From sequence record PQ309151.1: a stretch of DNA of 64,000 nucleotides; one strand, written 5' to 3'. The notes below the pieces were generated by a model. It had not been told where the DNA came from. It ran no database searches and saw only the letters and a program-made list of their open reading frames with translations. The translations under genes and the position numbers were made by a program. Each line of letters opens with the position of its first letter. Position 1 is the first letter of the stretch. This document shows positions 7,964 to 39,648 of the stretch, in pieces.

Positions 7964-8454
7964 TTCTTGTTCTCGATAGCGTCAGCCAAAATTGCAGGAT
8001 CAGCCCAGGTGAAGAGAACCGCAAACATCACGAGATAACGGTTGTTCTTCAGAATGCTGATGACGGCAGTAGGATCAGGAATACGATCGCGATATTCCTG
8101 TCCCGTGAACGACAACTTCGGATCCGGCGTTTCTTTCGTATTGAACGAATTGGCCAGATGAGCAATCAACGCCTGATAGTCTTCTTCAGGCAGGGTGAAA
8201 CGAGTACGGAACAACGCCGTCAAAGTGTAGACGAGGTTGATGTGAAGTGTGTCCTTGTAGATCTCGTCGTAGAGATTCTGCATCGAATCTTCCGTGAATA
8301 CGAGCCAGCCTTGCGTTTGCAAGAGAAGCGACGCGATGAACTGTGCTTCGTTGTATCGGTTTTCGCTCGATACGGCCAGGTTCATGAAGTAATGATGCAG
8401 TGCCTGGTTGATTGCGTTCTGCGCGTTTTCGGTAATTTCTGCAAGAGTTGCCAT
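7960..8454 (-). CDS. Hypothetical protein
   Basis: Likely start is the ATG at 8454 (MATLAEIT) with a GGAG RBS. Confidence 0.65.
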   Translation of the reverse strand: MATLAEITENAQNAINQALHHYFMNLAVSSENRYNEAQFIASLLLQTQGWLVFTEDSMQNLYDEIYKDTLHINLVYTLTALFRTRFTLPEEDYQALIAHLANSFNTKETPDPKLSFTGQEYRDRIPDPTAVISILKNNRYLVMFAVLFTWADPAILADAIENKK

Positions 8455-11196: not shown

Positions 11197-11290
11197 TCAT
11201 TTGAAATGAAGAATGCGTAAGTCAAATTATGGGTCGAACCATTAAAAATTATGATTTGACTCTTTAGTTTTTATCCTTAGCGAGATAAGC

Positions 11291-12172
11291 ATGGACCAAA
11301 TTTTCCAGTCGAACATCTACTCGGATCGGGATCCGGATCAGAACATGATCCAGATGAACTCGCTGTTCCTCAACCTGATTTCGACCTCCGCTCAAGCAGA
11401 CTGCCAGTCGATGCCGCTCAAGCAGTATTTCGGCGACTTCTACACGAAGGCACGTTTCTCGGTGGAGAACACGTTCGACAAGTTCCTCTCCTCGGCTCCG
11501 ATCGAGTTGCGTCCCGCGAAGACCTTCGAACGCTTCGTGGACACCCGTCCGTACGCGGACATCATGCAATACCGCGCTGAGATCCCTGAAGGTCTCATCG
11601 TGCCGTATCTCGACTATCTGAAGGTTCTCATTCCTGCTCAGGAGTCGGCCAACAGTGTCGTGAAGGACGTGATCGATCCGTTCACGACTTTCGTCTCGAA
11701 GATGATCTCGGACGAAATCTTCCGCAATCAGGCTGGGCATCAGATCAAGGAGTTCGCTAAACTTGAACCGGAATACGTGAAGGTCAACAAGGAATTCGCC
11801 AAGTGCTTCGGCAAGAACGATTTCCGTGCCTCCGCAGCATTCGGTGAAGTCGTCAAGCGCAATGGCGATTGGCGTGCGGTCTTCTCGGAAACGGCAGAAC
11901 TGAAGAAGCTGTATCAGGCGTTTCCGGCTCAGGAACTCACCAAGAAGCTCAACCGTCTCTACGAGATGCTCGATGAGCTCGTCGAACAGATCAAGCTCGA
12001 TCACTACGAGCAAGTGGAAAAGGAAGTCACGCACCTGCTGGGTAACGGCATGTACTTCGTGGCCAAGATGGTGGAACTGGCAGCATTGACCACCTTCCGC
12101 TCGCGTACGTTCATCGAGACGATCAACACGACGATCAAGAACATCGAAGAGTTGCCCAACGTTCGCGGTTAA
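11291..12172 (+). CDS. Putative virion (head) protein
   Basis: 293-aa ORF with highly biased codon usage, in its own unit bounded by AT-rich DNA and a palindrome. Function inferred. Confidence 0.45.
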   Translation: MDQIFQSNIYSDRDPDQNMIQMNSLFLNLISTSAQADCQSMPLKQYFGDFYTKARFSVENTFDKFLSSAPIELRPAKTFERFVDTRPYADIMQYRAEIPEGLIVPYLDYLKVLIPAQESANSVVKDVIDPFTTFVSKMISDEIFRNQAGHQIKEFAKLEPEYVKVNKEFAKCFGKNDFRASAAFGEVVKRNGDWRAVFSETAELKKLYQAFPAQELTKKLNRLYEMLDELVEQIKLDHYEQVEKEVTHLLGNGMYFVAKMVELAALTTFRSRTFIETINTTIKNIEELPNVRG

Positions 12173-24730: not shown

Positions 24731-26803
24731 ATGTCCGATCCCGTGACTAGCTATCCGTTTGACCCCACAGGGCAGGCGGCTAGCAACCGAATCGTGGATG
24801 AACAGATCGTCGTCCTCCCTCCGGGTGACCGACTGTTCCAGTTCGCCATGCCAGTCTTCTGTCCCTTCTTCGAAGAAGGACACTCGCTGAAGCTGCGTGA
24901 TATCAATAACAACGTCACACCATTAGTCTTGGGTGTGGACTATTACCTCAGTCACAAGTTCATGGATGCCTCCTTGGCTACCATGCACCCGATCTGGGGT
25001 TCGGTCAGTTTCCTAAAGCCGGTTAGCGGTGTGTTGCTGATGACGTACCAGACCCTTGGTGGTCCGTGGACGATCGATCAGGCGACGATTACCGAAATTC
25101 TGATGAACACCAGCCAGAACCCGCGTATCACGACGTGGGAACAGGTGGTGGAACGTCCTACGGATTTCCCGGTGATCGATCACCCGTGGAATCTGGACGA
25201 CATGGTCGGCATGTCGGAAATCTATGGCGTGCTGGAGAACTTCTACGAAGCCTATCTCGCATCCCTGGATCCGAATGGCGGTGGTGGCGGTTCCTCGATC
25301 ATCATCGACCACATCAACAACAAGAACAACCCTCACCAGGTGACGGCAGCCCAAACGGGTGCTTACAGCCAGCTCCAGATGAATACGATTCTGGGCGGCT
25401 ATCTCACCACGTCGGCTCAAGCGGCTGACTCTGCCAAGTTCAATGGCAAGACGTACGCTCAGATGCTGGCGGATGTTGTCAATACGAAGGTCAACGCAGC
25501 AGCTGCCGCGGATAACGCGACGCATGCAACGACGGCCGATACGGCTACGAATGCCAACGCACTTGGCACCAAGAGCCTGGCACAGTTGATGACCGACGTG
25601 GTGAACACGAAGGTTGCGAACGCTACTCACGCAGACAATGCCGATCACGCAACGGCTGCTGATTCGGCTACCAACTCGTCTCAGCTGGGTGGTCAGTCGC
25701 TGGCTCAGGTCCTTGCTGCTGCTCAGGCACAGAAAGCGGCGGACACGACGCTCTTCAACGGCAAGACCTATGCTCAGGCTACGGCAGACATTCTGACTGG
25801 TCAGGCAGCGGACTCCCAAAAGCTCGGTGGTCAAACGCTGACGCAGATCATCGCGACTCTCCAGCAATCGACCGGCGATGCTTCGACGCTGAATGGCAAG
25901 TCGTACGCTGACATCATGGCGGCAGTGAAGACCACCAAGGTCGACAATGCTACCAATGCGGATACGGCAGCCAATGCAAACTCGCTGGGCGGTCAGTCTC
26001 TCTCGCAGATTCTGGCTTCGGTGGCTTCGGTGGTTCCGGATCTGTCGCACAACTCGGAAGCTGTCTACGGCTATACGTTCGATCAGCTGGTGACGGCTAT
26101 CCAGCAAAGCAATACGTGGTCCAGCGGTCTCGACTATCTGTGCGTGGACCTGGACATCGAACATGCTACGCCGATCCATTCGAACAATGGTGGTACGGCA
26201 GACAACACGTACGAGTATCTGTTCATCGGTTCGTTCCCGATTCCGACGACTGGTTCGAGCAACCAGTACTACGATCCGACGGTGCGTCAGTATTCGTCTG
26301 TCATGGATCTGGAATTGTACATGGCGGGTCAGATCATCCGCATCGGTACGAACGTTCAGGTCAACGACGATCAATCGATTGCGCTGTCGCTCTACAGCAA
26401 TGCAGGTCCTTTGACCAACCTCGTGTCGGTCGGTACTCGCAATGACAACTCGACCCTGAAGTCCTCGGACAATTCCCAAACGGGTAAGTTCAAGGAAGTC
26501 TGGTTGCGTTTCAAGACGTCGTCGAACTTGCGTCGCCTGGGTATCTTCCAGTTCACCAAGAACGACTTCGTGCTCGATCCGTCGGAAACCGTTAGCCTTT
26601 ACGATTCGACCGACGTGCGTCTGAACACGGTGGTTTGGTCGCAGCCTGCGTACAATACCAACGAAAACACGCTGAATACGGCTATCGGAACCGAAGTTAC
26701 GAACCGTACGAACGCTGACTCCGCCATCCGCACGGACACCCAAGCAGCACTGGATGCCCTGGCAGATCAGATCAACTCTCTCACGGCTACTCCGGCAGCC
26801 TAA
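24731..26803 (+). CDS. Tail fibre protein with repetitive shaft
   Basis: N-terminal YPFDPTG..NRI..E anchor domain of the phiKZ-like fibre family, the NNPHQVTAAQ motif, and ADxA-rich shaft repeats. Confidence 0.75.
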   Translation: MSDPVTSYPFDPTGQAASNRIVDEQIVVLPPGDRLFQFAMPVFCPFFEEGHSLKLRDINNNVTPLVLGVDYYLSHKFMDASLATMHPIWGSVSFLKPVSGVLLMTYQTLGGPWTIDQATITEILMNTSQNPRITTWEQVVERPTDFPVIDHPWNLDDMVGMSEIYGVLENFYEAYLASLDPNGGGGGSSIIIDHINNKNNPHQVTAAQTGAYSQLQMNTILGGYLTTSAQAADSAKFNGKTYAQMLADVVNTKVNAAAAADNATHATTADTATNANALGTKSLAQLMTDVVNTKVANATHADNADHATAADSATNSSQLGGQSLAQVLAAAQAQKAADTTLFNGKTYAQATADILTGQAADSQKLGGQTLTQIIATLQQSTGDASTLNGKSYADIMAAVKTTKVDNATNADTAANANSLGGQSLSQILASVASVVPDLSHNSEAVYGYTFDQLVTAIQQSNTWSSGLDYLCVDLDIEHATPIHSNNGGTADNTYEYLFIGSFPIPTTGSSNQYYDPTVRQYSSVMDLELYMAGQIIRIGTNVQVNDDQSIALSLYSNAGPLTNLVSVGTRNDNSTLKSSDNSQTGKFKEVWLRFKTSSNLRRLGIFQFTKNDFVLDPSETVSLYDSTDVRLNTVVWSQPAYNTNENTLNTAIGTEVTNRTNADSAIRTDTQAALDALADQINSLTATPAA
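25424..26102 (+). repeat. About eight protein-level shaft repeats, alternating NGK[TS]Y and G[GT][QK][ST]L types
   Basis: In order: FNGKTYAQM, LGTKSLAQL, LGGQSLAQV, FNGKTYAQA, LGGQTLTQI, LNGKSYADI, LGGQSLSQI, VYGYTFDQL. Boundaries approximate. Confidence 0.8.
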
Positions 26804-26814
26804 TCTGAGGAATC

Positions 26815-27936
26815 ATGAGCGACGTTACGATTACTCCCGTCTCACATGTTTTCGACGAGACCGGCACTCTTGCCGAGAACTACGTCGAGAACGAACAACG
26901 AGATCTGGCACAGCGCAACATCCGCGCTGCATGCACGCGATACGGTGCTTTCTTCATCGAATCGTTCAAGATCCGGGATGCCAATGGCAACGCCCTGTTG
27001 GCAAACCAATACCAGTTCGGACTCTTCGCTGAAGACCTGTCCGAAAAGACTGGTAAGGAAATCGCTGGTGCGGTGATCATCACCGACCCGGCTGTGATTT
27101 CGCCTGTCTTCATTGACTATCAGTGTGTTGGTGGTCCGTGGGGTGCAACCAACGAGCAGATCATTGATCTGTTCACTGCGCTGATGACTGACGATCGTCC
27201 TGTGACGTGGCCGAACATTCTGGGTAAACCGGATGGCTTCAAGCCCGCTCACCACTTCCAGGACATCGGCGACCTGTTCGGTGCTGAATACATCGTCCAG
27301 GCTCTGGAGCGTTTGGGTAACGCGTACCTCATGGGCGACAATGCGTCGCACGATGAGATTCTGCGTAACATCGATCAGTTGCGTTCGGACATGAATCAGG
27401 GCTTGACTGACCTGAGCAATGCTCTGAAGGCTTACGCTGATGCAGGCGATGCAAAGGTTGAAGCAGACCTGAGCAACGAAGCCCAGCTTCGTGCAGCAGC
27501 AGACACCCAGCTGCAGAACAACATCAATTCGGAAGCGACGACACGCGGCAACGCGGATACGACGTTGCAGACGAACATCAACAACGAAGCGACTGCTCGT
27601 GCGAATGCCGTCACTGGCGTTCAGAACAACCTGAACTCGGAAATCACCGCTCGTCAGAATGGTGACTCCGCGCTCAATACGAGCATCACGAACGTGAACA
27701 ACGCACTGACGGCGCACACCTCGGCAACGGGTAACGTGCACAATCTGACTCCGGCTCAGCTGGGCGTTTACACGATCGCTCAGGTCGATGCGCTGATCAA
27801 CAGCGTCAACGCGAGCCTCGGCAACTACGTCAAGAAGAATGCCGGTGAAGATACGTCCGTTACCGTTAGCGGTGGCGTGATCTACATCTTCATGTCGGGC
27901 GCATGGCGTGCTGTGTGGCCGCCGCAGTGGCAGTAA
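26815..27936 (+). CDS. Tail fibre protein, paralog of 24731-26803, with a coiled-coil stalk
   Basis: Related N-terminus (FDETGTLAENYVENE..WPNILGKP..HH..D..G.EY), EAxxRxxADxxLQxNI repeats, GNVHNLTPAQ, and a C-terminal IYIFMSGAWR. Confidence 0.72.
   Translation: MSDVTITPVSHVFDETGTLAENYVENEQRDLAQRNIRAACTRYGAFFIESFKIRDANGNALLANQYQFGLFAEDLSEKTGKEIAGAVIITDPAVISPVFIDYQCVGGPWGATNEQIIDLFTALMTDDRPVTWPNILGKPDGFKPAHHFQDIGDLFGAEYIVQALERLGNAYLMGDNASHDEILRNIDQLRSDMNQGLTDLSNALKAYADAGDAKVEADLSNEAQLRAAADTQLQNNINSEATTRGNADTTLQTNINNEATARANAVTGVQNNLNSEITARQNGDSALNTSITNVNNALTAHTSATGNVHNLTPAQLGVYTIAQVDALINSVNASLGNYVKKNAGEDTSVTVSGGVIYIFMSGAWRAVWPPQWQ
27478..27687 (+). repeat. About four ~18-aa coiled-coil repeats (ExxxRxxADxxLQxNIxx)
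   Basis: EAQLRAAADTQLQNNINS, EATTRGNADTTLQTNINN, EATARANAVTGVQNNLNS, EITARQNGDSALNTSI. Confidence 0.8.
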
Positions 27937-27987
27937 AATAAAAAGCAACTAGCCGTCGGGATATAGTGACTCTATAGGGGATTGATC

Positions 27988-28476
27988 ATGACTGTCGTCT
28001 TGAAAGATATCTCGTTGGATGATCTACATCTCGACGAGCTGTTGTTCCATCCGTATCCGTACGAACAGCAGATGGTGAAGTTCATCACTGCAGACGGTCG
28101 GCAACTTACTCCGTTCGATGCATCTGAAGTAGGCAAGATGCGTATGTTCGGTACGATCAAAATCGAAGGCATGGAAAAGATCTCGAAGAAGGTCTTTGAT
28201 GCCCTGAAGAAATTTTCTCATGATGGTCCGATGACCTGTCATGTTTTCATCGCAGCTGAGAATGCCCCCAGCTTTCCGGATCACACCGATCCGGACGGCG
28301 TATTGCTCTATGTCGTCGATGGTGTAAAAAACCTGATGATCGACGATCAGTTCCATACGCTTAACGCCGGTCAGTCGGTTTTCATTCCGGCTGGCACCAA
28401 ACACCGTGCCATCAATTATTCTTCTTCAATCATGATGAGCATTGGATTTGAAAAGTTCATTGTGGAGAAGCTCTAA
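27988..28476 (+). CDS. Cupin/JmjC-type (Cupin_4/RoxA-like) Fe(II)/2OG oxygenase
   Basis: SFPDHTD..VLLYVVDGVK and SVFIPAGTKHRA give an HxD...H facial triad. Confidence 0.78.
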   Translation: MTVVLKDISLDDLHLDELLFHPYPYEQQMVKFITADGRQLTPFDASEVGKMRMFGTIKIEGMEKISKKVFDALKKFSHDGPMTCHVFIAAENAPSFPDHTDPDGVLLYVVDGVKNLMIDDQFHTLNAGQSVFIPAGTKHRAINYSSSIMMSIGFEKFIVEKL

Positions 28477-29537
28477 TGCATCGCACCGTTTATATCAAGA
28501 CCACTGAAGCTTGCAATCTGAATTGCAAGCACTGCTTCACAGGTGGCAATAGTCCCAAGCGCACGTTTCTGGATATCGAAAAGACCATCGATTGGACTCG
28601 TCGCTTGTTCGAACACCTCGATTTCAATGACCACACGCATTTCGAATTGCATGGTGGCGAACCGTTCCTCCTGCCCGTCAAGCAGTTGAAGGAACTCACC
28701 AAGGGCATTCGTACGTGGGGTCCGGTCAAGCATTCGATTGGTGCGACCACGAATCTGGTTTACAAGTTGGACGATGAACTGCTCTGGTTCATCCGTAACG
28801 ATCTCGAAAGTATCGGCACGTCCTGGGATCCGGACATTCGCTTTGCTAACGAAAAGCAGAAGAATCTCTGGACCGACAACCTGAAGAAGGTCATCGATGT
28901 CGCCGACGTCACGCTGAATGTCAGCGTGTCACGCAAGCTGATCGAGATGAATGTGAGCGACCTGCTCATGTTCCTGAGGGATACGGGCTGTTATCGGGTT
29001 CAGTTCGAACGTATCACGACGAACGGCAATGCTCGCAAGAATCTGGCATTGTTCCCGACGAATGCAGAAATCAACGACTGGTATCTTCGCCTGCACAATG
29101 CAACTGAAAAGTTGAGCGCTCGCGGATGGTTCCATAACGCATCCCTGGAGGATGTGTATGCAAAATTCGAAAATGGCAATGCTTGCTCTGGCACGTTCTG
29201 TCGGAATTGCGAAGAGTCCATCTTTACGCTCAACGCGGACGGCAGCATTGGGGGTTGCGCCAATTCGGCGCCGGAGGAATCCTTTGGACACATCGATGAT
29301 GATATCGGAGAACTGTTCGATGCCTCCGGACGAATCGATAACATTGTTAAAGAGCGCATGCGCCACGAGCAGTGTTACGTTTGCCCTGTGGCCGCTTATT
29401 GCGGTGGTGATTGCCACCGACTGGCTTGGGAAGGTGATGTCTGTCCCGCCCCACGCCAACTGATGAAGAAGCTGGCAGGCTTGCCGCTGGAGGAGTCTGC
29501 CATCCGGAAACGATTTATTCCCATTGCGGCGGTTTAA
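28476..29537 (+). CDS. Radical SAM/SPASM peptide-maturase-like enzyme (#1)
   Basis: CNLNCKHC, HGGEP, and SPASM cysteines CSGTFCRNC..GC..CYVCPVAAYCGGDC..C. Confidence 0.92.
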   Translation: MHRTVYIKTTEACNLNCKHCFTGGNSPKRTFLDIEKTIDWTRRLFEHLDFNDHTHFELHGGEPFLLPVKQLKELTKGIRTWGPVKHSIGATTNLVYKLDDELLWFIRNDLESIGTSWDPDIRFANEKQKNLWTDNLKKVIDVADVTLNVSVSRKLIEMNVSDLLMFLRDTGCYRVQFERITTNGNARKNLALFPTNAEINDWYLRLHNATEKLSARGWFHNASLEDVYAKFENGNACSGTFCRNCEESIFTLNADGSIGGCANSAPEESFGHIDDDIGELFDASGRIDNIVKERMRHEQCYVCPVAAYCGGDCHRLAWEGDVCPAPRQLMKKLAGLPLEESAIRKRFIPIAAV

Positions 29538-29543
29538 GGAAAT

Positions 29544-30104
29544 ATGAGTACATATCGCACAGACGTCGACGCCGTAGCCCAGGCGTACGTACGTAACAAC
29601 GTGAACGGGGCGATCAACCCGTATCGCTCGGATTGGGCCCCGGGCTATGTCAACATGGGCATGATTGGCTGGATCTCCCAGGATCCGAACCAGTCGCATC
29701 CGTCGTGGAATGGCGAACTCAGTACCGCTGGCAACACGATGGTGACAAACCAGGTTCGCAATGCGATGATCGACCTGGGCAACTACTACGCGTGGATTGC
29801 CAAGGGTCATTACGGCCTGCAATCAACCAACCAGAGCGGTGCCAACTACCTGCAATACGAAGGCTACGGCTACTTCGTGTTCAATGGTGCGGCTCCGGGC
29901 GCTCAGGATCATGCGAACCGTGTGTCGGCAGATCTGAACACCGCTGGTACCATGAACGGGACGATCCGTTATCAGCAGCTGATCGATTTCTACAACTTCG
30001 CGTGGGGCATCATCTGGAATCGTAAGGACGACCTGCAAGTCGAACTCACGGTTTGCCATTCGTCGTGCCACACTTCGTGCCACGGCTCGCGCGGTCGTCG
30101 TTAA
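29544..30104 (+). CDS. Putative substrate/precursor protein with C-terminal (CHxS)3-RGRR core
   Basis: Ends in VCHSSCHTSCHGSRGRR*. The only Cys residues are in this tail. Lies directly downstream of rSAM/SPASM #1. Confidence 0.65.
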   Translation: MSTYRTDVDAVAQAYVRNNVNGAINPYRSDWAPGYVNMGMIGWISQDPNQSHPSWNGELSTAGNTMVTNQVRNAMIDLGNYYAWIAKGHYGLQSTNQSGANYLQYEGYGYFVFNGAAPGAQDHANRVSADLNTAGTMNGTIRYQQLIDFYNFAWGIIWNRKDDLQVELTVCHSSCHTSCHGSRGRR

Positions 30105-30114
30105 GGAGAAGAAC

Positions 30115-31185
30115 ATGATCAATCTGTTCGATCGTGTTTACATCAAACACGACAACGTACTCGCCCGTGCTGAAGGTCAGAAGAAGTTGATCATCAGCCC
30201 GAAGGTCAAAGAGATCGCCTATGTGACCGACAAGCTGCAACAGCAGCAAGCCGGCATCATGGGAACGTACGAGACGCTCTCGGATGCTCTCCATTACGTT
30301 GGTGGTCAGGACGCTTTCTGGGTCGGTCTGGCACAAGCCAAGGCAAAAGTCATCATCATCGCAGAGCGCGATGTCGTGGCTGAGTTGCTGATTCAATACT
30401 GGAAGGCGATCTTCAAGGACATCTCGTCCGAAGCAGCTTACCTTCTGTACCAGATCCAGATCAACAACGAAAACCTGCATGCTCACCGTCCGACGGAAAA
30501 GCGCGTGCGTCTGTTCTCGCCCAACACCACCGAAGCCGACATCGAACTGATGTCGAAGGAAGCGTTCGTCGCACTCTTCGACAAGTCGACACCGGCACTC
30601 ATCGACCTGTCTTCGGATATGGCGATGCGTTCGCTTCCTTTCGAATATCTACTGATGTCGTATCTGGCAGATCCGAGCGACGATAGCGTGAAGCGCGTGT
30701 TCTTCCAGAAGCTCGACGCAATCATGCGTTCCAACATCGTTGCCAAGCTGATCGGTGGACGTGAAGAACTCATGTTCGAATCGCACAACTACTATCTGCT
30801 GGAACCGGGCGAAGTCGAGCATCTGATCACCGATCCGATCGCCCACATGAAGGCCAGCGGCCATCTGGCATGGGTCATGGACGAAGCGTTCGTCTATGGC
30901 AATGAAGACGAGATTCTGAAGAAGTATTCGCTGGATCAGATCCGCTTCTTCTTCGAACAGATCAAGCGTCTGGTGCTGGAAGACGAATCGATCTTCGTCG
31001 CCATCGAATGCATCAAGAACAAGCAGTATGCCAAGCTGATCGAATACGACATCGGTGACCATCAAGGCAACTTCTTCGGCACTGGTGCGTTCGTGAACAA
31101 GATCAATGGTCTGTTGGTCTCGTTCTCGTATCAACTCAAGCGGATGGGCAACCTCAATCTGCTCAAGCAGTACGAACTGAAGTAA
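30115..31185 (+). CDS. Hypothetical protein of the rSAM cluster
   Basis: 356-aa ORF with an AAGGAG RBS and strongly biased codon usage. No recognised motif. Confidence 0.75.
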   Translation: MINLFDRVYIKHDNVLARAEGQKKLIISPKVKEIAYVTDKLQQQQAGIMGTYETLSDALHYVGGQDAFWVGLAQAKAKVIIIAERDVVAELLIQYWKAIFKDISSEAAYLLYQIQINNENLHAHRPTEKRVRLFSPNTTEADIELMSKEAFVALFDKSTPALIDLSSDMAMRSLPFEYLLMSYLADPSDDSVKRVFFQKLDAIMRSNIVAKLIGGREELMFESHNYYLLEPGEVEHLITDPIAHMKASGHLAWVMDEAFVYGNEDEILKKYSLDQIRFFFEQIKRLVLEDESIFVAIECIKNKQYAKLIEYDIGDHQGNFFGTGAFVNKINGLLVSFSYQLKRMGNLNLLKQYELK

Positions 31186-31191
31186 TGCGAC

Positions 31192-31232
31192 TACTACCTG
31201 ACTCCTTCGGGAGTTGGGTAGTATCTTTTTTT
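31192..31232 (+). terminator. Intrinsic terminator inside the rSAM cluster
   Basis: Stem TACTACCTGACTCC / GGAGTTGGGTAGTA with a C(UUCG)G loop followed by TCTTTTTTT. Confidence 0.85.
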
Positions 31233-31279: not shown

Positions 31280-32629
31280 ATGAGTGAAGAGAAGAAAGGA
31301 ATTGAATTCGGCAAGGAATGGATTGGCGAACTGCCGATTCAGAAACTGATGCGCGAAGATGCTGAACGTCGGCACGCCGACGGTGAAGTGCATGAGCTCG
31401 GCGAAATGAAGAAGACGTACTTTCCGGCGTTGGGTAAACTCGTCGAAATGCCGGCCAAGAAGATGCCGGAAGCAATTCCGCCCTGGGAAGAACTCCCCAA
31501 CGAAGCAGCAAGCGATGACATGTCGGACGAAGGCCCTATCCAGTTCGCGCCTATCGAAAATGGGCCGGCGCAAGTCGGATTGGGAGTGAAAGCATTCTGC
31601 GACGAACTGCTCAACGGCACTAAACTGGACGCCACCCCTGCTGTGAAGGTGACGTCGGAAGTTCAATCGCCTGAAGAAGCCGCGCAGGGTTATTCCTGGA
31701 AACTGAACATCGAAGTCAAGGACGGCAAAGTGGCCAATACTGAAACGGTTCCGGCAGAAAATGTCGGCGATGGTTGGGGTGCAGAACTCCCGCCCGAACA
31801 GCAAACGCCGGAAGTCCAGACCGGCATCCCGGAAGACAAACTCGTCGAAGTCACGGTGCCGTTCCCCGCTGACAAGATTCGCATGTACTTCCAGGATAAG
31901 TCCCTCTTCTTCATCGCGAACTATAGCGAGTCGAAGCTGAAGGGTCAGGCGTTCCTCACGTATCTGTCGAACATCAACATCCCGTCGGATGTGAAGTTCA
32001 ATACGCCGATCAGCTACGAAGAGTACGCTGAAGTCATGAAGGCGTACATGGAACAGCCGGGCGTGATCAACTGCGCCGGTCTGCACGTCATGGCAGCTGA
32101 AATGCTGCTGGTGGCCAAGGGCTTGCCGTATGAGCGTTCGCCTTACGCTCTGCCGATCGACGAGAAAGTGATTCTCATGTTCATCGAGGAACACTACGAG
32201 TTGGTACAGAAGTGGCTGCACTTCATCGACTCGACGCAAGTGTTCGCGTTGCGTTCGATCAAGGCGCTGAACGATCACTACAAGCCGGAAGAAGTCTTCC
32301 CGGTTATCGAAGATCGCAGCTACGTGGGCTGGAATATCGCGCAGCTGTATCGCATTCCGGAATTCATCGCGGTGTACTTCTCGATCGAGAACGCGGAGTA
32401 CAAGCTGTCGTACTTCAAGGACCAGTATGAAGAGTACATGTTCAAGAACGAGACGCTCGCCAAGTACTTCTCGTCGCAGAACAACTTCGCTGCGTTGTAC
32501 TTCATGCACTACGCAACGGGTCTGTTCAAGCCCGAAGACATCAATCACGGCCTGTTCAAGATCGGCGTGTTCGACAAGGCAGGTCCGTACTACGTGGATC
32601 GACCGTATGAAGCTACCATTCAAGTCTGA
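31280..32629 (+). CDS. Hypothetical protein of the rSAM cluster (acidic, Pro-rich N-terminal half plus helical C-terminal domain)
   Basis: Start moved to the ATG at 31280 (GAGG RBS, after the terminator). Confidence 0.72.
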   Translation: MSEEKKGIEFGKEWIGELPIQKLMREDAERRHADGEVHELGEMKKTYFPALGKLVEMPAKKMPEAIPPWEELPNEAASDDMSDEGPIQFAPIENGPAQVGLGVKAFCDELLNGTKLDATPAVKVTSEVQSPEEAAQGYSWKLNIEVKDGKVANTETVPAENVGDGWGAELPPEQQTPEVQTGIPEDKLVEVTVPFPADKIRMYFQDKSLFFIANYSESKLKGQAFLTYLSNINIPSDVKFNTPISYEEYAEVMKAYMEQPGVINCAGLHVMAAEMLLVAKGLPYERSPYALPIDEKVILMFIEEHYELVQKWLHFIDSTQVFALRSIKALNDHYKPEEVFPVIEDRSYVGWNIAQLYRIPEFIAVYFSIENAEYKLSYFKDQYEEYMFKNETLAKYFSSQNNFAALYFMHYATGLFKPEDINHGLFKIGVFDKAGPYYVDRPYEATIQV

Positions 32630-33707
32630 TTCGAACTCTTCGATGACGCTTGATAAGGCATCCCAATACCACCTAAGCCTGAGCTTGGAGTGGTTAAAGG
32701 GATGCCAGTTCAACTGTAAGGGTTGCCACGTCAATAAACAGATGGGGCTTCCCTTTTCAGGTGACGACCTGGCCAATCTGAATAAGTGGGTATCGAGCAT
32801 GCGCGATAAAGGCAATTACTTGCCGACCATCGTGTTTCTTCAGCCCACTGACTTTCTGACTGCCGAGAACACCGTCGACATTCTGAAGAGTCCGTACGCC
32901 TATTCTGTCCTGTCTGTCTTTAAACGTTTGTCGTTGCAAACGACATTCCTGAATATGGATCGTGCGGTAGAGATCGCTTCGATTCTGAAAGCGCGTTTCT
33001 TCCACATGGAGCTTGAGCTCAACTTCATCATTGAGCCCGAGAAAGTCAACAACGAAAAGTATCTCGAAACGATTCGTGCCAATCGTGCGAAGTTTATCGA
33101 GATGCTGGATTGGAAGAAGCACATCGCGTCCTTCGCCATCATGAACGTATATGAGTACGATCAGGTGAAGAGGAACGATGTGAAGAAGATCCTGTCGGAT
33201 TACCAGGCTCTTCACGAGAAGATCAAGGACAAGTTTAATTCCACGATCGACTTTAACTTCTCCATGACCCGTAATCCGTGGTGGAGTAACGAAGACGTAG
33301 CAGATGCTGTACGCAGCGTCAGTCGAATCTTCGATGGTGGAGTAGATAACGTTTTCAACCAGACCATCCGATTCTCATTCGGTAAGCTGGAAGACTCGTC
33401 GATCGAAAAGCATTACAACTGGCATCAAGGACACTTGTATGTGTCGCCGATGATCTATGAGCGCATTGCGTCGTTCCATCGGAAGCTGAAGATCCCTCAT
33501 GTCCTCTACTCTGTGTATGAGACTGAAGACTTCGAACGCCGGTTGCTGATCGATCAGTATCACAACTCCGAAACAAAAACCGAGTGCAATTCGTGTCGAT
33601 ATCAAGCCTCTTGTATTGAACGCAATGTCCTGACGTTTATGGACATGCATGAAATCAAGGACTGCATCATCGCCCGCAAAGCTCTCGATGCCATCAACGT
33701 CATCTGA
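32607..33707 (+). CDS. Atypical radical SAM-fold protein (#2)
   Basis: CQFNCKGC and C-terminal CNSCRYQASC..C. The GGE motif position reads LQPTDF. Start is the ATG at 32607 or 32643. Confidence 0.75.
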   Translation: MKLPFKSDSNSSMTLDKASQYHLSLSLEWLKGCQFNCKGCHVNKQMGLPFSGDDLANLNKWVSSMRDKGNYLPTIVFLQPTDFLTAENTVDILKSPYAYSVLSVFKRLSLQTTFLNMDRAVEIASILKARFFHMELELNFIIEPEKVNNEKYLETIRANRAKFIEMLDWKKHIASFAIMNVYEYDQVKRNDVKKILSDYQALHEKIKDKFNSTIDFNFSMTRNPWWSNEDVADAVRSVSRIFDGGVDNVFNQTIRFSFGKLEDSSIEKHYNWHQGHLYVSPMIYERIASFHRKLKIPHVLYSVYETEDFERRLLIDQYHNSETKTECNSCRYQASCIERNVLTFMDMHEIKDCIIARKALDAINVI

Positions 33708-33757: not shown

Positions 33758-34777
33758 ATGGACAACGAAATTCTGAACGAATTGCTCGCAAGCAAAGTAC
33801 AAGACTCCACCGAGATCGAACACCATCTCTTTGAGTTCTGCAACCTGAACTGCTCTTTCTGCGGTCAGGATCATGACTCGAAGGTCGGTATGGAATCGAT
33901 CATCGAGAAAGCCCACAAGACCGTGGACTTCATCTTTCATTCGAAGAAAACGAAACACACCATCAACGTGATGGGTGGTGAGATCTTCAATGACAAGGTC
34001 GAGACCACTACCATCCTGGATTACTTTCAGTTCTACGAGATCATCCGTAAGACCTGTCAGGATCTGGGTGTGGAATTCCAGATCAACTGGGTCACGAACC
34101 TGATCTTCACGGAAAACCGTGAGATGGTCGATTGGCTCATGGATAAGACGGGCGAGCATTGCAAGATCTCGACCTCTTACGACTTCGCAGGGCGTGGATT
34201 GGACATCAACAAGCATCTGGTCTTCACCCGCAACCTGGAGCGTTACAAGAAGTACATTGGCGTCGTGGGATTCGTTCTCACTCGACCAGCTATCCGAAAG
34301 CTGATGAACGCCAAGGATATGTTCTTCATCAAAACGCTCTATCCGAACTTCCCGCTTTACTTCGACTGGTATGTGCCGGAGAAGTCCGCTGAGAAGATGA
34401 TGCCATCTGAGCAGGAGATGCTCGACGCATTACTCTACGTAGCGGAACACTATCCGAACGTGGAGCCAGTCAAATCCATGCTGGAGAACACGCACAACAA
34501 GATGACGTGCTTCAGCCTGAACAAAACGACGATATTGCCCGATGGCAAGGAAGTCACTTGTCGCTACCTCGAATACGACAAAGAAAAATTTATTAACGAC
34601 GTTGATTATTCGAGCAACGCAAATATCATCCAGGCACATCTTGATCGTAACGAATGCTATTCGTGTCCTCACTTTGACCGCTGCACATTTCGGTGTTTTG
34701 TACAAGCTGACTGGGCAGGACTCGAACGACTCCCAACCTGTTTCATCCGAACCTTCTTCGACAAAACTGCATCATGA
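33758..34777 (+). CDS. Radical SAM protein with C-terminal Cys cluster (#3)
   Basis: CNLNCSFC, MGGEIF, and CFSL..TC..CYSCPHFDRCTFRC..C. Confidence 0.88.
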   Translation: MDNEILNELLASKVQDSTEIEHHLFEFCNLNCSFCGQDHDSKVGMESIIEKAHKTVDFIFHSKKTKHTINVMGGEIFNDKVETTTILDYFQFYEIIRKTCQDLGVEFQINWVTNLIFTENREMVDWLMDKTGEHCKISTSYDFAGRGLDINKHLVFTRNLERYKKYIGVVGFVLTRPAIRKLMNAKDMFFIKTLYPNFPLYFDWYVPEKSAEKMMPSEQEMLDALLYVAEHYPNVEPVKSMLENTHNKMTCFSLNKTTILPDGKEVTCRYLEYDKEKFINDVDYSSNANIIQAHLDRNECYSCPHFDRCTFRCFVQADWAGLERLPTCFIRTFFDKTAS

Positions 34778-35301
34778 AAATCATTCTTATCGCAGCTGAA
34801 GCAGCAAACAAAGTCATCGGCAACAACGGCCAAATGCCGTGGCACATTCCCGAAGACCTGCAACACTTCAAGAACGAAACGAAAGGCAGTGCAGTAATCA
34901 TGGGCCGCAAGACCTGGGAATCGCTTGGCAGCAAAGCTCTGCCCAATCGCACCAACGTTGTCGTCTCGAAGACCCTGGGTCCTCTGGAACATGCTCATTC
35001 GGTACGCAGCTTCCGTACTGCCGTCAAGGGTCTGATCGATAGTGGTTACGATAAGGCTTATGTGATCGGTGGCGAATCGCTCTACCGTGCAGCAATGCCG
35101 TGGGCAAGCCAGATCGTCCTCACGAAGCTGTACAAGTCGTACGAAGGCGACGCGCATTTCCCGGATATGGATCCGCGTGACTGGGTTCAGTGGCAAGGAA
35201 GAGAAAACTTCCACAACCCGGCACAGCCGTTCAGTGTTCACTACTACACGGCAATCAATCAACCTGACGTCGCCAAATGGGTCGACCTCATCAAGGACTG
35301 A
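34774..35301 (+). CDS. folA: Dihydrofolate reductase
   Basis: Motifs VIGNNGQMPWHIPEDLQHFK, IMGRKTWES, LPNR, VIGG..LY and EGDAHFP. Confidence 0.93.
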   Translation: MKIILIAAEAANKVIGNNGQMPWHIPEDLQHFKNETKGSAVIMGRKTWESLGSKALPNRTNVVVSKTLGPLEHAHSVRSFRTAVKGLIDSGYDKAYVIGGESLYRAAMPWASQIVLTKLYKSYEGDAHFPDMDPRDWVQWQGRENFHNPAQPFSVHYYTAINQPDVAKWVDLIKD

Positions 35302-35302
35302 C

Positions 35303-35902
35303 ATGAACATCACTCTGATTGCCTTGATGGCAAACAACGGCGTCATCGGCTCGGAAGGCAACAAGCCGATGTTCAACGCAGAACACGCGAAGTTCCTGAA
35401 GGAATACGTGAAGGGCAAACCGGTCGTCATGGGCCGTAAGACCTTTGAAGCACTGGGTGGTCCGATCGATGGCGTAGCGCAAACCTTCGTCTTCAGTCGT
35501 CAGCCGGGTTCGTTCGCTGAAGGTATCCCGACCGTACTGAGTGTTGACGGTTTCTTCATCTCGGCTTTCGATCGCATGAAGGCACATGAAGCTGTGGTGA
35601 TCGGTGGTGCATCGACTTTCCATGCATTCTACCCATGGGCAGACACGATGCATATCACTCACATTCGCGACAACGTCCAGGGGGATCGTTACTTCCCGCA
35701 GTTCCCCGGATGGCGTCCTGGCCTCATCAACGCTCGTTATGAGCAAGGTGAAACCCAGTTCGAACGGATCGACTATCGTCGCGACAGCTATGATCCGTAT
35801 CCGGCTACCACGGTCGAAGATCTGAACACGGCCAGTATCTTGAACCATATCCGTAAACTACGCGGGTATCGAGCAAAGCCGATGCAACTGAACGAGGAAT
35901 AA
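35303..35902 (+). CDS. Divergent DHFR-fold protein lacking folate-binding residues
   Basis: Retains VIG, VMGRKTFE, VIGG and GDRYFP. PWxxPEDL is replaced by PMFNAEHA, and LPNR is lost. Start at the ATG at 35303. Confidence 0.8.
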   Translation: MNITLIALMANNGVIGSEGNKPMFNAEHAKFLKEYVKGKPVVMGRKTFEALGGPIDGVAQTFVFSRQPGSFAEGIPTVLSVDGFFISAFDRMKAHEAVVIGGASTFHAFYPWADTMHITHIRDNVQGDRYFPQFPGWRPGLINARYEQGETQFERIDYRRDSYDPYPATTVEDLNTASILNHIRKLRGYRAKPMQLNEE

Positions 35903-35908
35903 GATTCC

Positions 35909-36559
35909 ATGGCTGGCAAACCACGTAAACGCGAGCCGATGAAGGGAAAACGCTTTGGTCGTTTGCTAGTCCTGGATGAAGGCAAGAGAGGCTATAACGG
36001 TACGAATCATTGGAGATACCACTGTCGATGCGATTGCGGTAAAGACACGTATCCTCGAAGCGTGGACCTTTTGATCGGTCGTGCGAAAAGCTGTGGGTGT
36101 CTTGTACTTTCAAGGCGCCATGGTAAGAGTGGTATCCCGGAGTACTGGGCATGGATGCATATGAAGAACCGCTGCCTCAATCCGAATGACGCCGACTACC
36201 ATCGTCATGGTGGTCGTGGGATCGGAGTATTCCAGGAGTGGGTCGAATCGTTCGCTGCTTTCTTTCGCGACATGGGCTTCAAGCCCAGCAAGGAACATGT
36301 CTTAACTCGGATAGATCCTGATGGTCATTACGAGCCAGGTAACTGTCAGTGGAAGGTGCCTGAGAAGAAAGCGGCTCCTGTTCCAAAAGGACCCATGCAC
36401 TTTTACATGGGGGAATCGAAAACCCTGGAAGAATGGGCTGAGATTTTCAAGATGGACCCAGCCGTCATTCAGGATCGATTAGACCGCGGCTTACCTTTCA
36501 CACTCGCTATATTGAGGTTCTCCAATGTCGCACCCAAGCTTAATCGTCAAACCGACTGA
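35909..36559 (+). mobile_element. Free-standing HNH-type homing-endonuclease-like gene
   Basis: GKRFGRL, CRCDCG..KSCGC, EY.AW..MK.RC, GGRGI and RIDPDGHYEPGNCQW. Overlaps the next gene by 35 nt. Confidence 0.75.
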
Positions 36560-37601
36560 AGCGTGTAACTTTAAGTGCACGTTCTGCTCGTCAACGGACA
36601 TCCAGGGCGAATCTCCTAACCTCGATGTCGAGTACGTCAAGCTTTACCTGGAGCGTTTCCCCCAGACTCCGACCATTATCGTGAACGGCGGCGACCCGCT
36701 CATGATGAAACCTGAGTACTACTGGTCGATTCTGAAGATTATCGAGGACATGGGTCTTAAGACCACGCTCTCGTTTACAAGCAATCTGTGGGCTTTCTAT
36801 AAAAAGCCTAGTCTGTGGGTGGATTTGTTCCGCCATCCGCTTGTAGGGGTCTCTACGAGCTTCCAATACGGCAATGCGCGCCTCAAGGGCGATCTCACTC
36901 CGTTTACGGAAGAAGAATTCTGGAAAATCTCCGACATGATGCTCGAACTGGTCGGATACCGTCCTTCCTTTATCGCAGTCATCACGAAAGAAAATGAACA
37001 TACCGCGATCCAGACTGTCGAGCTTGCTAAACGCATGGGTGTTGTCTGCAAGCTTAACTATGCAATGGCGTCGGGACCTAAGACGCAATTCAAAGGCATC
37101 ACCATCGGCAACGCAGACTCCACTTACGTCCTTGCAGATATCTACGAAAAGTATATCGAGATCGCCCAGGCGGGTCTCGCGCCGTGGGAACATAACACCC
37201 AGGTCATGGTGAATCGCCTCAAAGGCCAAGCCAACCAGATCTGTCCTCAGGCCAGAGAGTGTGATGTAGGTATCCGAGCACTCCAGCCTGGTGGTAAGTA
37301 TTACAGCTGTGGAGCATTTGGGGATGATGGATTATTTCCGATTGACTTCGCTAATGAAATGGCTGGTGGATTCGAAAGACCACTCTTTCATCAGCCCGAG
37401 CTCCAATCGCTCAAGAACTCGTGCTACGAGTGTCCCATGTTCGAGATCTGCAATGGATGCCGTAAAACCATTCACGACCTCAAACGTCTTGACCTGGTGG
37501 AAGTCCACTGCTCCAAGATGAAGACGCTAGCGCCTACGATCATCGACATTAACGGGCTCAAAGGACGCATCCATCCTACGCCCTACGTGAAGGAGACATA
37601 A
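36525..37601 (+). CDS. Radical SAM/SPASM protein (#4)
   Basis: CNFKCTFC, NGGDP, and CPQAREC..YSC..CYECPMFEICNGC..C. Confidence 0.9.
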   Translation: MSHPSLIVKPTEACNFKCTFCSSTDIQGESPNLDVEYVKLYLERFPQTPTIIVNGGDPLMMKPEYYWSILKIIEDMGLKTTLSFTSNLWAFYKKPSLWVDLFRHPLVGVSTSFQYGNARLKGDLTPFTEEEFWKISDMMLELVGYRPSFIAVITKENEHTAIQTVELAKRMGVVCKLNYAMASGPKTQFKGITIGNADSTYVLADIYEKYIEIAQAGLAPWEHNTQVMVNRLKGQANQICPQARECDVGIRALQPGGKYYSCGAFGDDGLFPIDFANEMAGGFERPLFHQPELQSLKNSCYECPMFEICNGCRKTIHDLKRLDLVEVHCSKMKTLAPTIIDINGLKGRIHPTPYVKET

Positions 37602-38146
37602 TGGAACTGCTGCAACCTTGGAAAACCACCATCGGTAAACTCTCAGTACTCGACTTCGTTGACATCGACGCAATGCTCAATGAAGTCATGCAACACCCTG
37701 CAGTCATGGAGAAGCCCGTTAACGGATCTCTACGAGTGAAGTATGAAGAGTTTCCGATCTGTTCAGATGTACTCGAACACAAGCTCAAGCCTCAGGTAGA
37801 GCGGTACATCAGCACAGTCACTACCCACACTCCAAAGCGTCTATCGTGGAGTAGCTGGTTTCACATCTGTATGCACGGTAATGGACTCATCCCCCATTAC
37901 CATGACGAAGCACTCAACTCCGTTCTGTACCTTACGACCTCCAAAGCTAACCTGGTACTCAGAGACCCGTTAGCCTCCCAAGCCCGTCAATGGCCTCAGG
38001 AGATGCGTAAGGTAATACACGCCGATCAACAGTTCCATCCAGTTAAAGGTGACTTCGTAATCTTCCCAGGTTACGTAGATCACTACGTCATGTCCGATGA
38101 GCCAGACTTCAGGATCTCCATGGCAACAGACTGGATCTTCAGGTAG
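37601..38146 (+). CDS. 2OG-Fe(II) oxygenase (PF13759/TIGR02466-like), paralog A1
   Basis: Motifs PHYH, SVLYL, LVLRDP, GDFVIFPGYVDH and FRIS. Confidence 0.82.
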   Translation: MELLQPWKTTIGKLSVLDFVDIDAMLNEVMQHPAVMEKPVNGSLRVKYEEFPICSDVLEHKLKPQVERYISTVTTHTPKRLSWSSWFHICMHGNGLIPHYHDEALNSVLYLTTSKANLVLRDPLASQARQWPQEMRKVIHADQQFHPVKGDFVIFPGYVDHYVMSDEPDFRISMATDWIFR

Positions 38147-38152
38147 ACCGTT

Positions 38153-39094
38153 ATGCTCGCTAATGAAACAGGCGTACTCAATGTAAGCCTGAACCCAACG
38201 TACTACTGCAACTTCAGATGTGACTTCTGTTACCTGACGAAGAAGCAACTCAACACACAGAACTATCTGCCCATAGAGGGTATCAGAAAGAAGTTCACAG
38301 AGATCGTGAGCTCAGGTCACGAGATCGGTCATGTGGATCTGTACGGTGGGGAGATCATGTTGCTCCCGACAGATTACATACTCGCCATTGGGGATCTGAT
38401 GGATGAGTTTCAGGTAGAGGATTGTGAGATCATCACGAACCTTTCTGCCTTCAAACAGCAGGTCGTAGAAGACCCTCGTTTTGGCCTCTCAGTGAGCTTC
38501 GATTGGGAGTCGAGAGCGCAGTCTGAGCATGTGTGGCAAAACATGCTAAAAGTCCGCAAACCCTTTACTGTATTGACTTTGGGTGTCAGGGGTGTGCTTG
38601 ACACAGATCCAGCTACCCTAGTCGAATCCATAAACCTGCTTGAGAACTGTAAAGCGTGGGAGATCAAGCCCTACAGCAAGAACCAGGCTAACCAGCTGGA
38701 TGTCACGGATAAAGAGTTTGAAGAGTTCGTCAAGAAGATCATCGAGTACCCGAACAAGAACTTCGAGTTCCTCAATGAGACGAAGCTGAGGACTATCAAG
38801 TTCCGTGACTACAATGCATTCTCTGACAACCACGTCTACATCACGCCTAAGGGAAACTTTGGTGTGCTGGAGTTCGATGAGAATGATCGCGAGTACTTCC
38901 TGGAGCTTAAGACCATGGACGATTACGTTCAATGGACTCAGGGAGAGAAGGCTCGTGTCATGAGTAACGAGACGTGTGGTAGCTGTCAGTACATGGGCAA
39001 GTGTGCGTCTGAACATCTGCGTGATGTGAAGTCCATGGAAGATGGCTGCAACGGATTCTACAATCTGATTCAGTGGTATGAGGCAAGGCCATGA
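38153..39094 (+). CDS. Radical SAM protein with C-terminal Cys cluster (#5)
   Basis: CNFRCDFC, YGGEIM and CGSCQYMGKCASEH..C. Confidence 0.88.
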   Translation: MLANETGVLNVSLNPTYYCNFRCDFCYLTKKQLNTQNYLPIEGIRKKFTEIVSSGHEIGHVDLYGGEIMLLPTDYILAIGDLMDEFQVEDCEIITNLSAFKQQVVEDPRFGLSVSFDWESRAQSEHVWQNMLKVRKPFTVLTLGVRGVLDTDPATLVESINLLENCKAWEIKPYSKNQANQLDVTDKEFEEFVKKIIEYPNKNFEFLNETKLRTIKFRDYNAFSDNHVYITPKGNFGVLEFDENDREYFLELKTMDDYVQWTQGEKARVMSNETCGSCQYMGKCASEHLRDVKSMEDGCNGFYNLIQWYEARP

Positions 39095-39648
39095 ACATTG
39101 AAGAAATGTGGACGACTCCGATCGGTACTGACAACTACCTGAACTTTGTTCGTGCTGGAAAGTTTCTGGATGAAGTCATGAGTCATCCGGAGATCATGGC
39201 GCAAACGAAGGTTGGTAGTCTTCGTATCTCGGATCGTCAGGAAGAGTTTCCTCATCTGACGCAGTTCATCCACAACCGACTACTCAGTCGAATGATCGAG
39301 TACGTGTACCAGTCGTTCGGCCATAAGGCGAAGAACATTACCTGGTCGGCTTGGGTACATACCTGCTTTCATGGGCAGGGGTTGGTTCCGCATTACCACA
39401 TGGGTGATGAGCATGTGGCGTCGATCCTCTATCTGACTGAGTCCAAGGCAGGACTCGTTGTGAGAGATCCGCGCGCTAACATGGTACGCAACTTTCCGCA
39501 GGAGATCCTGAAGGTGAGCTTTCAGGATTATCAGCACAATCCGCGTGAAGGTGACTTCATTATCTTCCCTACTTATCTCGATCACTACGTGATGGCAGCA
39601 GAGCCTGACTTCCGTGTGTCGATCGCAATCGACTGGTGCTTTCAATGA
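39091..39648 (+). CDS. 2OG-Fe(II) oxygenase (PF13759/TIGR02466-like), paralog A2
   Basis: Motifs PHYH, SILYL, LVVRDP, GDFIIFPTYLDH and FRVS. Colinear with 37601-38146. Confidence 0.82.
   Translation: MNIEEMWTTPIGTDNYLNFVRAGKFLDEVMSHPEIMAQTKVGSLRISDRQEEFPHLTQFIHNRLLSRMIEYVYQSFGHKAKNITWSAWVHTCFHGQGLVPHYHMGDEHVASILYLTESKAGLVVRDPRANMVRNFPQEILKVSFQDYQHNPREGDFIIFPTYLDHYVMAAEPDFRVSIAIDWCFQ

Follow-up and report, generated by a model that had tools for sequence, protein, structure and literature searches.

Most known cases of radical-SAM (rSAM) maturation concern small secreted peptides, and to our knowledge the whole proteins that serve as substrates of such enzymes are so far few (sulfatases, QhpC, CrpA and, since 2026, HxsA). 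The enzyme anSME acts on a short motif of a folded protein without the help of a leader or an RRE, and in sulfatases this motif is C/S-x-P/A-x-R. In the HXS anti-phage system the effector HxsA, a bacterial defence protein with a signal peptide, a peptidoglycan-binding domain and internal repeats, is matured by the rSAM enzymes HxsB and HxsC with HxsD, and a +8 Da change is found on its S-H-R-S-S unit (PMC13128918). In Methanococcus voltae, the rSAM/SPASM enzyme CrpC installs ranthionine thioethers on the Cys-rich protein CrpA (PMC13692751), while cyclophane links from His-C2 to C-beta are made by HtkB and HaaB (PMC11499958).

The locus described here lies in a window of 64,000 nucleotides, the whole stretch of DNA that was analysed, from RsoM3USA (PQ309151.1), a 225.6-kb Ralstonia jumbo phage of the genus Chiangmaivirus in the group RSL2/RSF1/FLC6/SURPRISE13; over the 4.4 kb that were compared (26800-31200) window and phage record agree to 100% and share their coordinates. 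The open reading frame at 29544-30104 encodes a protein of 186 residues, among them 19 Asn, 19 Gly and 13 Tyr, that ends in V-C-H-S-S-C-H-T-S-C-H-G-S-R-G-R-R directly before the stop codon. Its only Cys residues are at positions 171, 175 and 179, leaving the body Cys-free. The preliminary description of this DNA had pointed to three C-H-x-S units plus RGRR behind a Cys-free body rich in Asn, Gly and Tyr, and the translation agrees with it on every point. Back-translated into a nucleotide pattern, the tail has a single match in the window and no match in 100 dinucleotide-preserving shuffles. No Pfam, NCBIfam or PADLOC family was matched by the tail-bearing protein or by the products of the 30115 and 31280 genes (Table 1).

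The gene belongs to a plus-strand cassette that follows the genes of a baseplate protein and of two virion structural proteins, paralogues of each other. It starts 6 nt past the stop codon of the rSAM/SPASM gene rSAM1 and ends 10 nt ahead of the 30115 gene, with Shine-Dalgarno-like AAGGA/AAGGAG right before the starts at both junctions, and the unit running from the cupin to 30115 appears to be closed by the hairpin and its T-run, as expected from the transcription unit proposed earlier, which joined the gene to the SPASM enzyme, the cupin and 30115 and ended at 31192. The two virion structural proteins (24731-26803 and 26815-27936) share an N-terminal domain of ~175 residues (31% identity) that is kept in Pseudomonas phage pPa_SNUABM_DT01 (DT01), and they are probably paralogues with a place in the tail or baseplate. 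FLC6 (L003 2193-3101), RSF1 (L005 2203-3120) and FLC4-11C have, ahead of the cupin and after the virion structural gene, a GIY-YIG nuclease gene that looks like a mobile homing endonuclease and is absent from RsoM3USA (window 27937-27987), RSL2 and SURPRISE13. Two adjacent dihydrofolate-reductase paralogues (34774-35301 and 35303-35902) stand in the middle of the rSAM cassette, and a dihydrofolate-reductase gene likewise lies inside the rSAM cassette of a distant relative (L007).

Table 1. Features of the tail-gene cassette in the RsoM3USA window, with the evidence for each
Feature	Position	Strand	Evidence
Small cupin	27988..28476	+	Pfam Cupin_2 E 1e-11, weak JmjC_2
Radical-SAM/SPASM enzyme rSAM1, presumed tail maturase	28476..29537	+	CX3CX2C, SPASM Cys, TIGR04085
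Alpha/beta body of the tail-bearing protein (residues 1-170), predicted folded	29544..30053	+	AF2 pLDDT 86.7, pTM 0.79; PHROG 35144
16-residue tail, (C-H-x-S)x3 + R-G-R-R (letters 30054-30101), and stop codon	30054..30104	+	Conservation, AF2 disorder
356-aa partner protein, in part of the family only	30115..31185	+	PHROG 36207; no Pfam match
Intrinsic-terminator-like hairpin	31192..31223	+	14-bp stem with 6 GC pairs, then T-run; just 3' of the 30115-31185 gene
449-aa protein; C-terminal domain (~31838-32521) is the most constant non-rSAM partner	31280..32629	+	Gene neighbourhood, AF2
Divergent fifth radical-SAM protein	32607..33707	+	C-x3-C-x2-C near residue 34, Cys-rich C-terminus
Radical-SAM protein	33758..34777	+	Pfam Radical_SAM, weak; orthologues in 27/47 tail loci
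Radical-SAM protein with SPASM-like C-terminus	36525..37601	+	Pfam Radical_SAM E 9e-11; weak full-length anSME/DynA matches
2OG-Fe(II) oxygenase (2OG-FeII_Oxy_5)	37601..38146	+	Pfam E 8e-8
Radical-SAM protein	38153..39094	+	Pfam Radical_SAM; orthologues in 15/47 loci and all isolates checked
Second 2OG-Fe(II) oxygenase	39091..39648	+	Pfam 2OG-FeII_Oxy_5 E 5e-9

The tails encoded by six Chiangmaivirus genomes are identical save for one T/S change. A search of 5.8 billion proteins returned 13 full-length homologues, down to 33% identity, and only 29 columns of the resulting alignment (14 sequences) are invariant, 15 of which fall in the tail; the same search yielded two further proteins that have this tail on bodies of seemingly unrelated sequence. 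Scanning IMG/VR for the tail pattern followed by a stop codon gave 47 viral contigs with GC contents of 28-53% and proteins of up to 319 residues. As the 51-nt tail stretch exists in 40 nucleotide versions, in which both Ser and both Arg codon families are used, selection acts on the tail peptide, and a DNA- or RNA-level cause of the conservation is ruled out by codons that vary freely. A profile search of 1.84 billion representatives extended the family to 273 clusters; among the best 150 of these the match always runs to the last residue, and 128 of the 150 have the canonical end C-H-x-x-C-H-x-x-C-H-x-x-R-x-R-R, on proteins of 59-533 residues. At the third place of the His-x-x units Ser is preferred and not invariant (S/N/A). 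Pattern searches for the tail, with inspection of the neighbouring genes, placed it in phage and Bdellovibrionota genomes beside an rSAM cassette.

The bodies that carry the tail are rich in Thr, Ala, Asn, Gly and Ser and poor in Cys (96 of 143 have none at all), and neither BLAST nor hhalign detected similarity between bodies of different tail clusters once the tails were removed. Two Bdellovibrionota proteins (L169, L177) have four C-H-x-x units, not three. Some phages and MAG contigs have two tandem tail-bearing genes (L019, L020, L042, L147, L155, L157, L167 and L184), an arrangement that resembles multi-precursor RiPP clusters.

AF2, run with the 14-sequence alignment, predicts a confidently folded body followed by a disordered tail (pLDDT 40-57), in agreement with the earlier suggestion that the tail is fused to a folded carrier. 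Foldseek gave no significant PDB fold match for this body (best E 0.18). BFVD models showed the fold in a 178-aa protein (TM 0.68) and, less strongly, in a 296-aa protein of Agrobacterium phage Atu_ph07 (E 2.9e-4, TM 0.31). Since these matches link them, we regard the tail bodies as a single family that has diverged very far and may have gained additions; on the same grounds we abandoned the notion that the tail had moved from one domain to another of different origin.

The carrier had also been suspected to be a virion protein, and in Atu_ph07, the phage whose proteome bears on this question in place of that of a Chiangmaivirus, its homologue is one. The tail-bearing Atu_ph07 protein has a computed mass of 31.89 kDa, which is that of gp170, and the masses of gp176 and gp177 match the published table too. 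In purified virions gp170 (31.89 kDa) was represented by 8 unique peptides covering 35% of its sequence and was seen in gel bands 1-9, being most abundant in band 1 (PMC6102473 Table S5, Attai et al. 2018). Absent from the virion list are gp171, gp169, gp168 and gp165; neither the rSAMs nor the cupin nor the 31280-type protein gp169 appears in it (PMC6102473 Table S5). The gel samples had been heated in SDS, and most other proteins peaking in band 1 are of 75-140 kDa, with gp321 (36 kDa) as the exception (PMC6102473). The band-1 peak of a 31.89-kDa protein after such treatment therefore hints at a very stable or covalent form of high mass; it could also reflect an SDS-resistant oligomer.

The enzyme encoded directly upstream, rSAM1, has its CX3CX2C at C13/C17/C20 and eight invariant SPASM Cys (242, 245, 261, 300, 303, 309, 313 and 323), of which C300/C303/C309/C313 form C-x2-C-x5-C-x3-C. 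It had been singled out as the most complete SPASM enzyme, and it is indeed the sole SPASM protein in the window above the NCBIfam cutoff (TIGR04085, 31.7 bits against 27). Judged by its cluster motif and SPASM domain, it belongs to the superfamily of radical-SAM/SPASM maturases. The nearest characterised families are DynA, PapB, YhhB and anSME, with scores that are all far below the family cutoffs, and the closest solved structures by sequence are anSME (4K36-4K39, E 3e-9), 8VPO and CteB; these characterised relatives (DynA, PapB, YhhB, anSME, CteB) are all peptide or protein maturases. No RRE/PqqD domain was recognised in rSAM1 with Pfam or NCBIfam. The GenBank entry PQ309151.1 names the gene moaA (GTP 3',8-cyclase), which is very likely wrong, as the MoaA model gives 39 bits against a cutoff of 284.

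When an alignment of six rSAM1 orthologues was used as query against viral contigs, relatives were found on 377 of them. Among the best 80 of these 377 contigs, 74 have a plus-strand gene ending in the tail downstream of the rSAM1 relative, and its start is usually 10-60 nt past the rSAM1 stop. Of the six loci without such a gene, four are cut off within 300 nt on the downstream side, L124 has its tail gene on another part of the contig (L053), and L064 is left as the one tail-less locus unaccounted for. As 74 of the 76 contigs that can be evaluated, the best 80 minus the four that are cut short, hold both genes, the pair of rSAM1 and tail is close to obligate; homologues that usually lack rSAM neighbours, which would have spoken against the earlier proposal of an rSAM substrate, are not what was found. 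Judged by gene neighbourhood, the tail is the conserved partner of the adjacent rSAM/SPASM enzyme and most likely its substrate. On contigs encoding tail proteins of 124-144 aa the tail gene is not adjacent to rSAM1, and several 32607-type paralogues flank such genes.

Variant tails narrow down what the enzymes may act on. Some members of the body family of the window protein have a tail of equal length with a single Cys, C-H-x-S-Y-V-A-P-P-H-S-S-R-G-R-R, and in other members Gly replaces the first Arg of the tail. In the one-Cys lineage rSAM1 is intact and a 29-kb contig retains every cassette gene; loss of particular enzymes was looked for in one-Cys-tail lineages, and none had been lost. As this lineage keeps the cassette, what stays constant is the core C-H-x-S ... 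H-x-S-R-x-R-R. A set of three Cys is therefore not required; a simple model of three thioethers fails, and the variant speaks against a strict three-Cys cluster. The likeliest reaction sites, as far as sequence comparison can point to them, would be the Cys-His unit and the His-x-Ser-Arg unit. In L192 the automatic calls of two rSAM genes (7059-8027 and 11172-12146) start late and omit CX3CX2C; as the motif is present in the open frame upstream both genes are intact, and an N-terminal truncation of rSAM1 in L192 was rejected as a late gene call.

The set that recurs in tblastn searches of the tail loci comprises the cupin, rSAM1, the tail protein, the 31280-type protein, the rSAMs 33758, 36525, 38153 and 32607 and the 2OG-Fe(II) oxygenases, sometimes with a 30115-type protein, and in the window it amounts to five rSAMs and three oxygenases. 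Found directly 5' of rSAM1 in 23 of 47 tail loci, a set in which many contigs end short, the cupin has H85, H99, D101, K114 and H139 invariant in five distant orthologues. These residues include the H-x-D...H iron triad of the JmjC kind, so that it is probably a JmjC-like Fe(II) oxygenase with a predicted site compatible with side-chain hydroxylation. In 36 of 47 viral loci the tail gene is immediately followed by that of a homologue of the 31280-type protein. Its C-terminal domain (segment 31805-32626) is predicted by AF2 with a pLDDT of 91 and a pTM of 0.89, has no obvious catalytic residues and gave no significant PDB fold match with Foldseek (best E 0.05). Several Bdellovibrionota loci, as well as L010, L012, L026 and L028, encode a homologue of 30115 (20-25% identity) immediately 3' of the tail gene. 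The 32607-33707 product, annotated as hypothetical, is missed by Pfam and NCBIfam; because of its C-x3-C-x2-C and Cys-rich C-terminus we take it to be the fifth, very divergent radical-SAM protein. Orthologues of 33758 are also present in Atu_ph07, DT01 and Bdellovibrionota, those of 36525 (50-62% identity) occur in 23 of 47 tail loci, and the two 2OG-Fe(II) oxygenases are paralogues of 47% identity. Searches of the cassette with Pfam and NCBIfam recognised no protease or transporter, and no other conserved candidate substrate was seen in it.

Among isolates, the cassette is carried by the Chiangmaivirus group, Atu_ph07 (gp172-gp164) and DT01, and in these three isolate lineages it sits among baseplate/virion genes; Sinorhizobium phage Phosso was detected through its rSAM1 relative only. 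Altogether the cassette spans phage contigs of 28-53% GC, including marine ones, the three isolate lineages and Bdellovibrionota chromosomes. Scanning one genome per bacterial species gave 47 tail matches, of which ~39 are real, most of them in Bdellovibrionota MAGs, and about 8 were set aside as chance matches in high-GC DNA. Some of the Bdellovibrionota cassettes are on contigs of 1.3-2.8 Mb, and in one Bacteriovoracaceae chromosome the cassette stands between lspA and other ordinary genes, with no phage structural genes within 20 kb. Embedded in this Bacteriovoracaceae cassette, between the pair of tail protein and 31280-type protein and the rSAM1 orthologue, is a protein of 2355 aa (L187 11707-18774) whose repeats are Ig-like, Big_2 and RCC1/WD40-like; it may be an adhesin of the cell surface that is connected with the system. 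A cassette fragment with the tail gene is also present on a 4.3-kb contig (L168) of the assembly of a Firmicutes isolate, Dysosmobacter segnis BX15, and is possibly phage DNA in the culture.

Of the systems described above, HXS is the nearest conceptual relative. As in HXS, a whole protein with His-x-Ser units beside basic residues would be matured by more than one rSAM, here presumed from the genes, and the modified unit of HxsA, S-H-R-S-S, has its counterpart in H-x-S-R, the most constant part of the tail. Unlike in HxsA, the motif is strictly C-terminal, Cys-His always comes first and the carrier is a phage virion protein. The link to HXS drawn in the preliminary description does not extend to membership of that system: the HxsB model gives 23.8 bits for rSAM1 and 24.9 for rSAM 33758 (cutoff 370), the HxsC model 30.3 bits for rSAM 36525 (cutoff 267.9), and the tail protein has no HxsA model match, signal peptide or peptidoglycan-binding domain. 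The His-Xaa-Ser units (H-S-S, H-T-S and H-G-S in the window protein) are thus the only defining feature of HXS that is present. PADLOC returned no family beyond weak generic rSAM-type matches to pVip and PDC-M51A.

The pair CrpA/CrpC resembles the locus in that a SPASM gene adjoins the gene of a protein-sized substrate, which is presumed here, and in that the modified residues of CrpA are Cys. In that pair the enzyme contains an RRE and the substrate is rich in Cys along its whole length, whereas here the body is Cys-free, one to three Cys are confined to the 16-residue end and no RRE is detectable. The last tail unit, C-H-G-S-R, recalls the sulfatase motif with Cys at position 1 and Arg at +4, but most members have Gly, Ser or Asn at +2 instead of Pro or Ala, and the third Cys is dispensable in one lineage. 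The anSME model TIGR03942 gives 39.6 bits for rSAM1 against a cutoff of 349.45 and there is no sulfatase fold, which places the pair outside the anSME family. Regularly spaced Cys beside a SPASM enzyme are shared with the sacti-, ranthi- and SCIFF-type systems (AlbA, PapB, CteB) and with QhpC/QhpD; in contrast to the sacti-, ranthi- and SCIFF-type systems, the protein lacks a leader-core architecture and obvious conserved acceptors save His, Ser and Arg, and the scores exclude membership (PapB 46.3 bits against 340; AlbA, matched by another rSAM only, 17 against 850). With triceptides the tail has aromatic-x-x units in common, His-x-Ser/Asn/Ala occurring three times, whereas the invariant Cys ahead of each His has no counterpart there. 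YhhB is the third-best NCBIfam match to rSAM1, with 44.9 bits against 445 over the N-terminal 120 residues only, FxsB gives 34.6 bits against 370, and XyeB and GrrM stay below 25 bits, so that rSAM1 falls outside the triceptide maturases as well. None of the papers searched has the tail motif strings, and none of them gave mass-spectrometric data on a modification of the tail protein.

We propose that the product of 29544-30104 is a structural protein whose flexible 16-residue C-terminus serves as a built-in core peptide and is matured post-translationally. The free C-terminal tail would be bound by rSAM1, with the invariant R-x-R-R at its carboxy terminus and the beta-strand that precedes its first Cys as probable handles, and 5'-deoxyadenosyl radical chemistry on the C-H-x-S and H-x-S-R units would install at least one covalent change, most likely a Cys- or His-based cross-link. 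The cupin/JmjC-like and 2OG-Fe(II) oxygenases and the other rSAMs would probably add further changes, and the novel-fold 31280-type protein is a probable non-virion helper. The matured protein would then become part of the particle, near the baseplate and tail gene products; there its modified end may provide a very stable, possibly covalent or metal-bridged, linkage. Precedents for rSAM maturation of whole proteins are HxsA (PMC13128918) and CrpA/CrpC (PMC13692751). On balance we lean towards this reading, in which rSAM enzymes mature the C-terminal core of a virion structural protein, and hold it to be rather probable.

Three Cys and three His at a period of four are also a plausible ligand set, and the tail might bind Zn, Fe or Cu unmodified, perhaps between the subunits of a fibre or baseplate oligomer, while the rSAMs and oxygenases act elsewhere. 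Flexibility of the tail and presence of the protein in virions suit such a role, phage fibre proteins with His-coordinated metal are known, and a metal-bridged oligomer could explain the abundance of gp170 in band 1. Yet metal sites rarely demand an exact R-x-R-R end at a fixed distance from the stop, as is seen in more than 120 clusters, one lineage without Cys5, His6 and Cys9 retains every enzyme, and the near-obligate coupling to rSAM1 in a cassette that offers no other conserved candidate substrate would go unexplained, so that we consider an unmodified metal-binding tail unlikely. Covalent attachment of heme to the overlapping C-x3-C-H motifs, as in variant c-type cytochromes, had been raised as an alternative on account of the CX3CH spacing, and the window protein has two such motifs. 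It is disfavoured by the one-Cys lineage, in which no CX3CH is left beside an intact cassette, and Pfam and NCBIfam searches of the cassette found no signal peptide or export signal and no Ccm-type or heme-lyase gene; we regard it as extremely improbable.

The many tailoring enzymes and the C-terminal position of the core, which is as in PQQ and mycofactocin precursors, could instead mean that the body is a long leader or carrier of a true RiPP or cofactor precursor, from which the modified tail is cut off as a small molecule; the tandem duplicated genes in some phages and the cellular versions in Bdellovibrionota chromosomes would be in line with this. A discarded leader is hard to reconcile with a body that has its own conserved fold and is a virion component detected at 35% coverage, with a cassette placed among baseplate/virion genes in three isolate lineages and with the lack of a recognised protease or transporter, and release of a small molecule therefore seems quite improbable to us. 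That no neighbour apart from the rSAMs is as constant as the 31280-type domain (36/47), which has a confidently predicted novel fold devoid of obvious catalytic residues, and that its Atu_ph07 homologue gp169 stays out of the virion, would fit a tail that undergoes no covalent change and acts as a docking or sorting tag, recognised by the 31280- or 30115-type protein for delivery to the particle. Such a tag leaves unexplained both the equally tight link to the SPASM enzyme and the bacterial-chromosome cassette with no phage structural genes within 20 kb, and we judge it decidedly improbable.

Covalent maturation of a virion protein, the reading that we prefer, would make a structural protein of virus particles the substrate of radical-SAM chemistry, with a tail as conserved as an active site. 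More tentatively, and as a possibility that we ourselves find doubtful, the up to five rSAMs and three Fe(II) oxygenases may build a new protein-derived structure on the virion protein, a cross-linked and possibly metal-binding or redox-active end, that locks it (quasi-)covalently into a larger assembly; it would be common to giant phages and Bdellovibrionota because both must bind to or penetrate the envelope of their Gram-negative prey, and would represent the phage-side counterpart of the HxS effector used against phage DNA entry.

The tail-rSAM family, large and sharply defined, is apparently undescribed so far, and it reaches from hundreds of giant phages of soil, plant pathogens and the sea to Bdellovibrionota genomes. 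Papers on these phages list the cassette genes just as accessory (PMC5332604, PMC8066314, PMC11898562), and a survey of marine viral genomes reported as many as 12 rSAM genes in T4-like genomes and assigned them no function. If our proposal is true, it would explain the clusters of 4-12 rSAM genes that many giant phages carry, and the family may bring to light novel radical reactions of Cys-His and His-x-Ser units.
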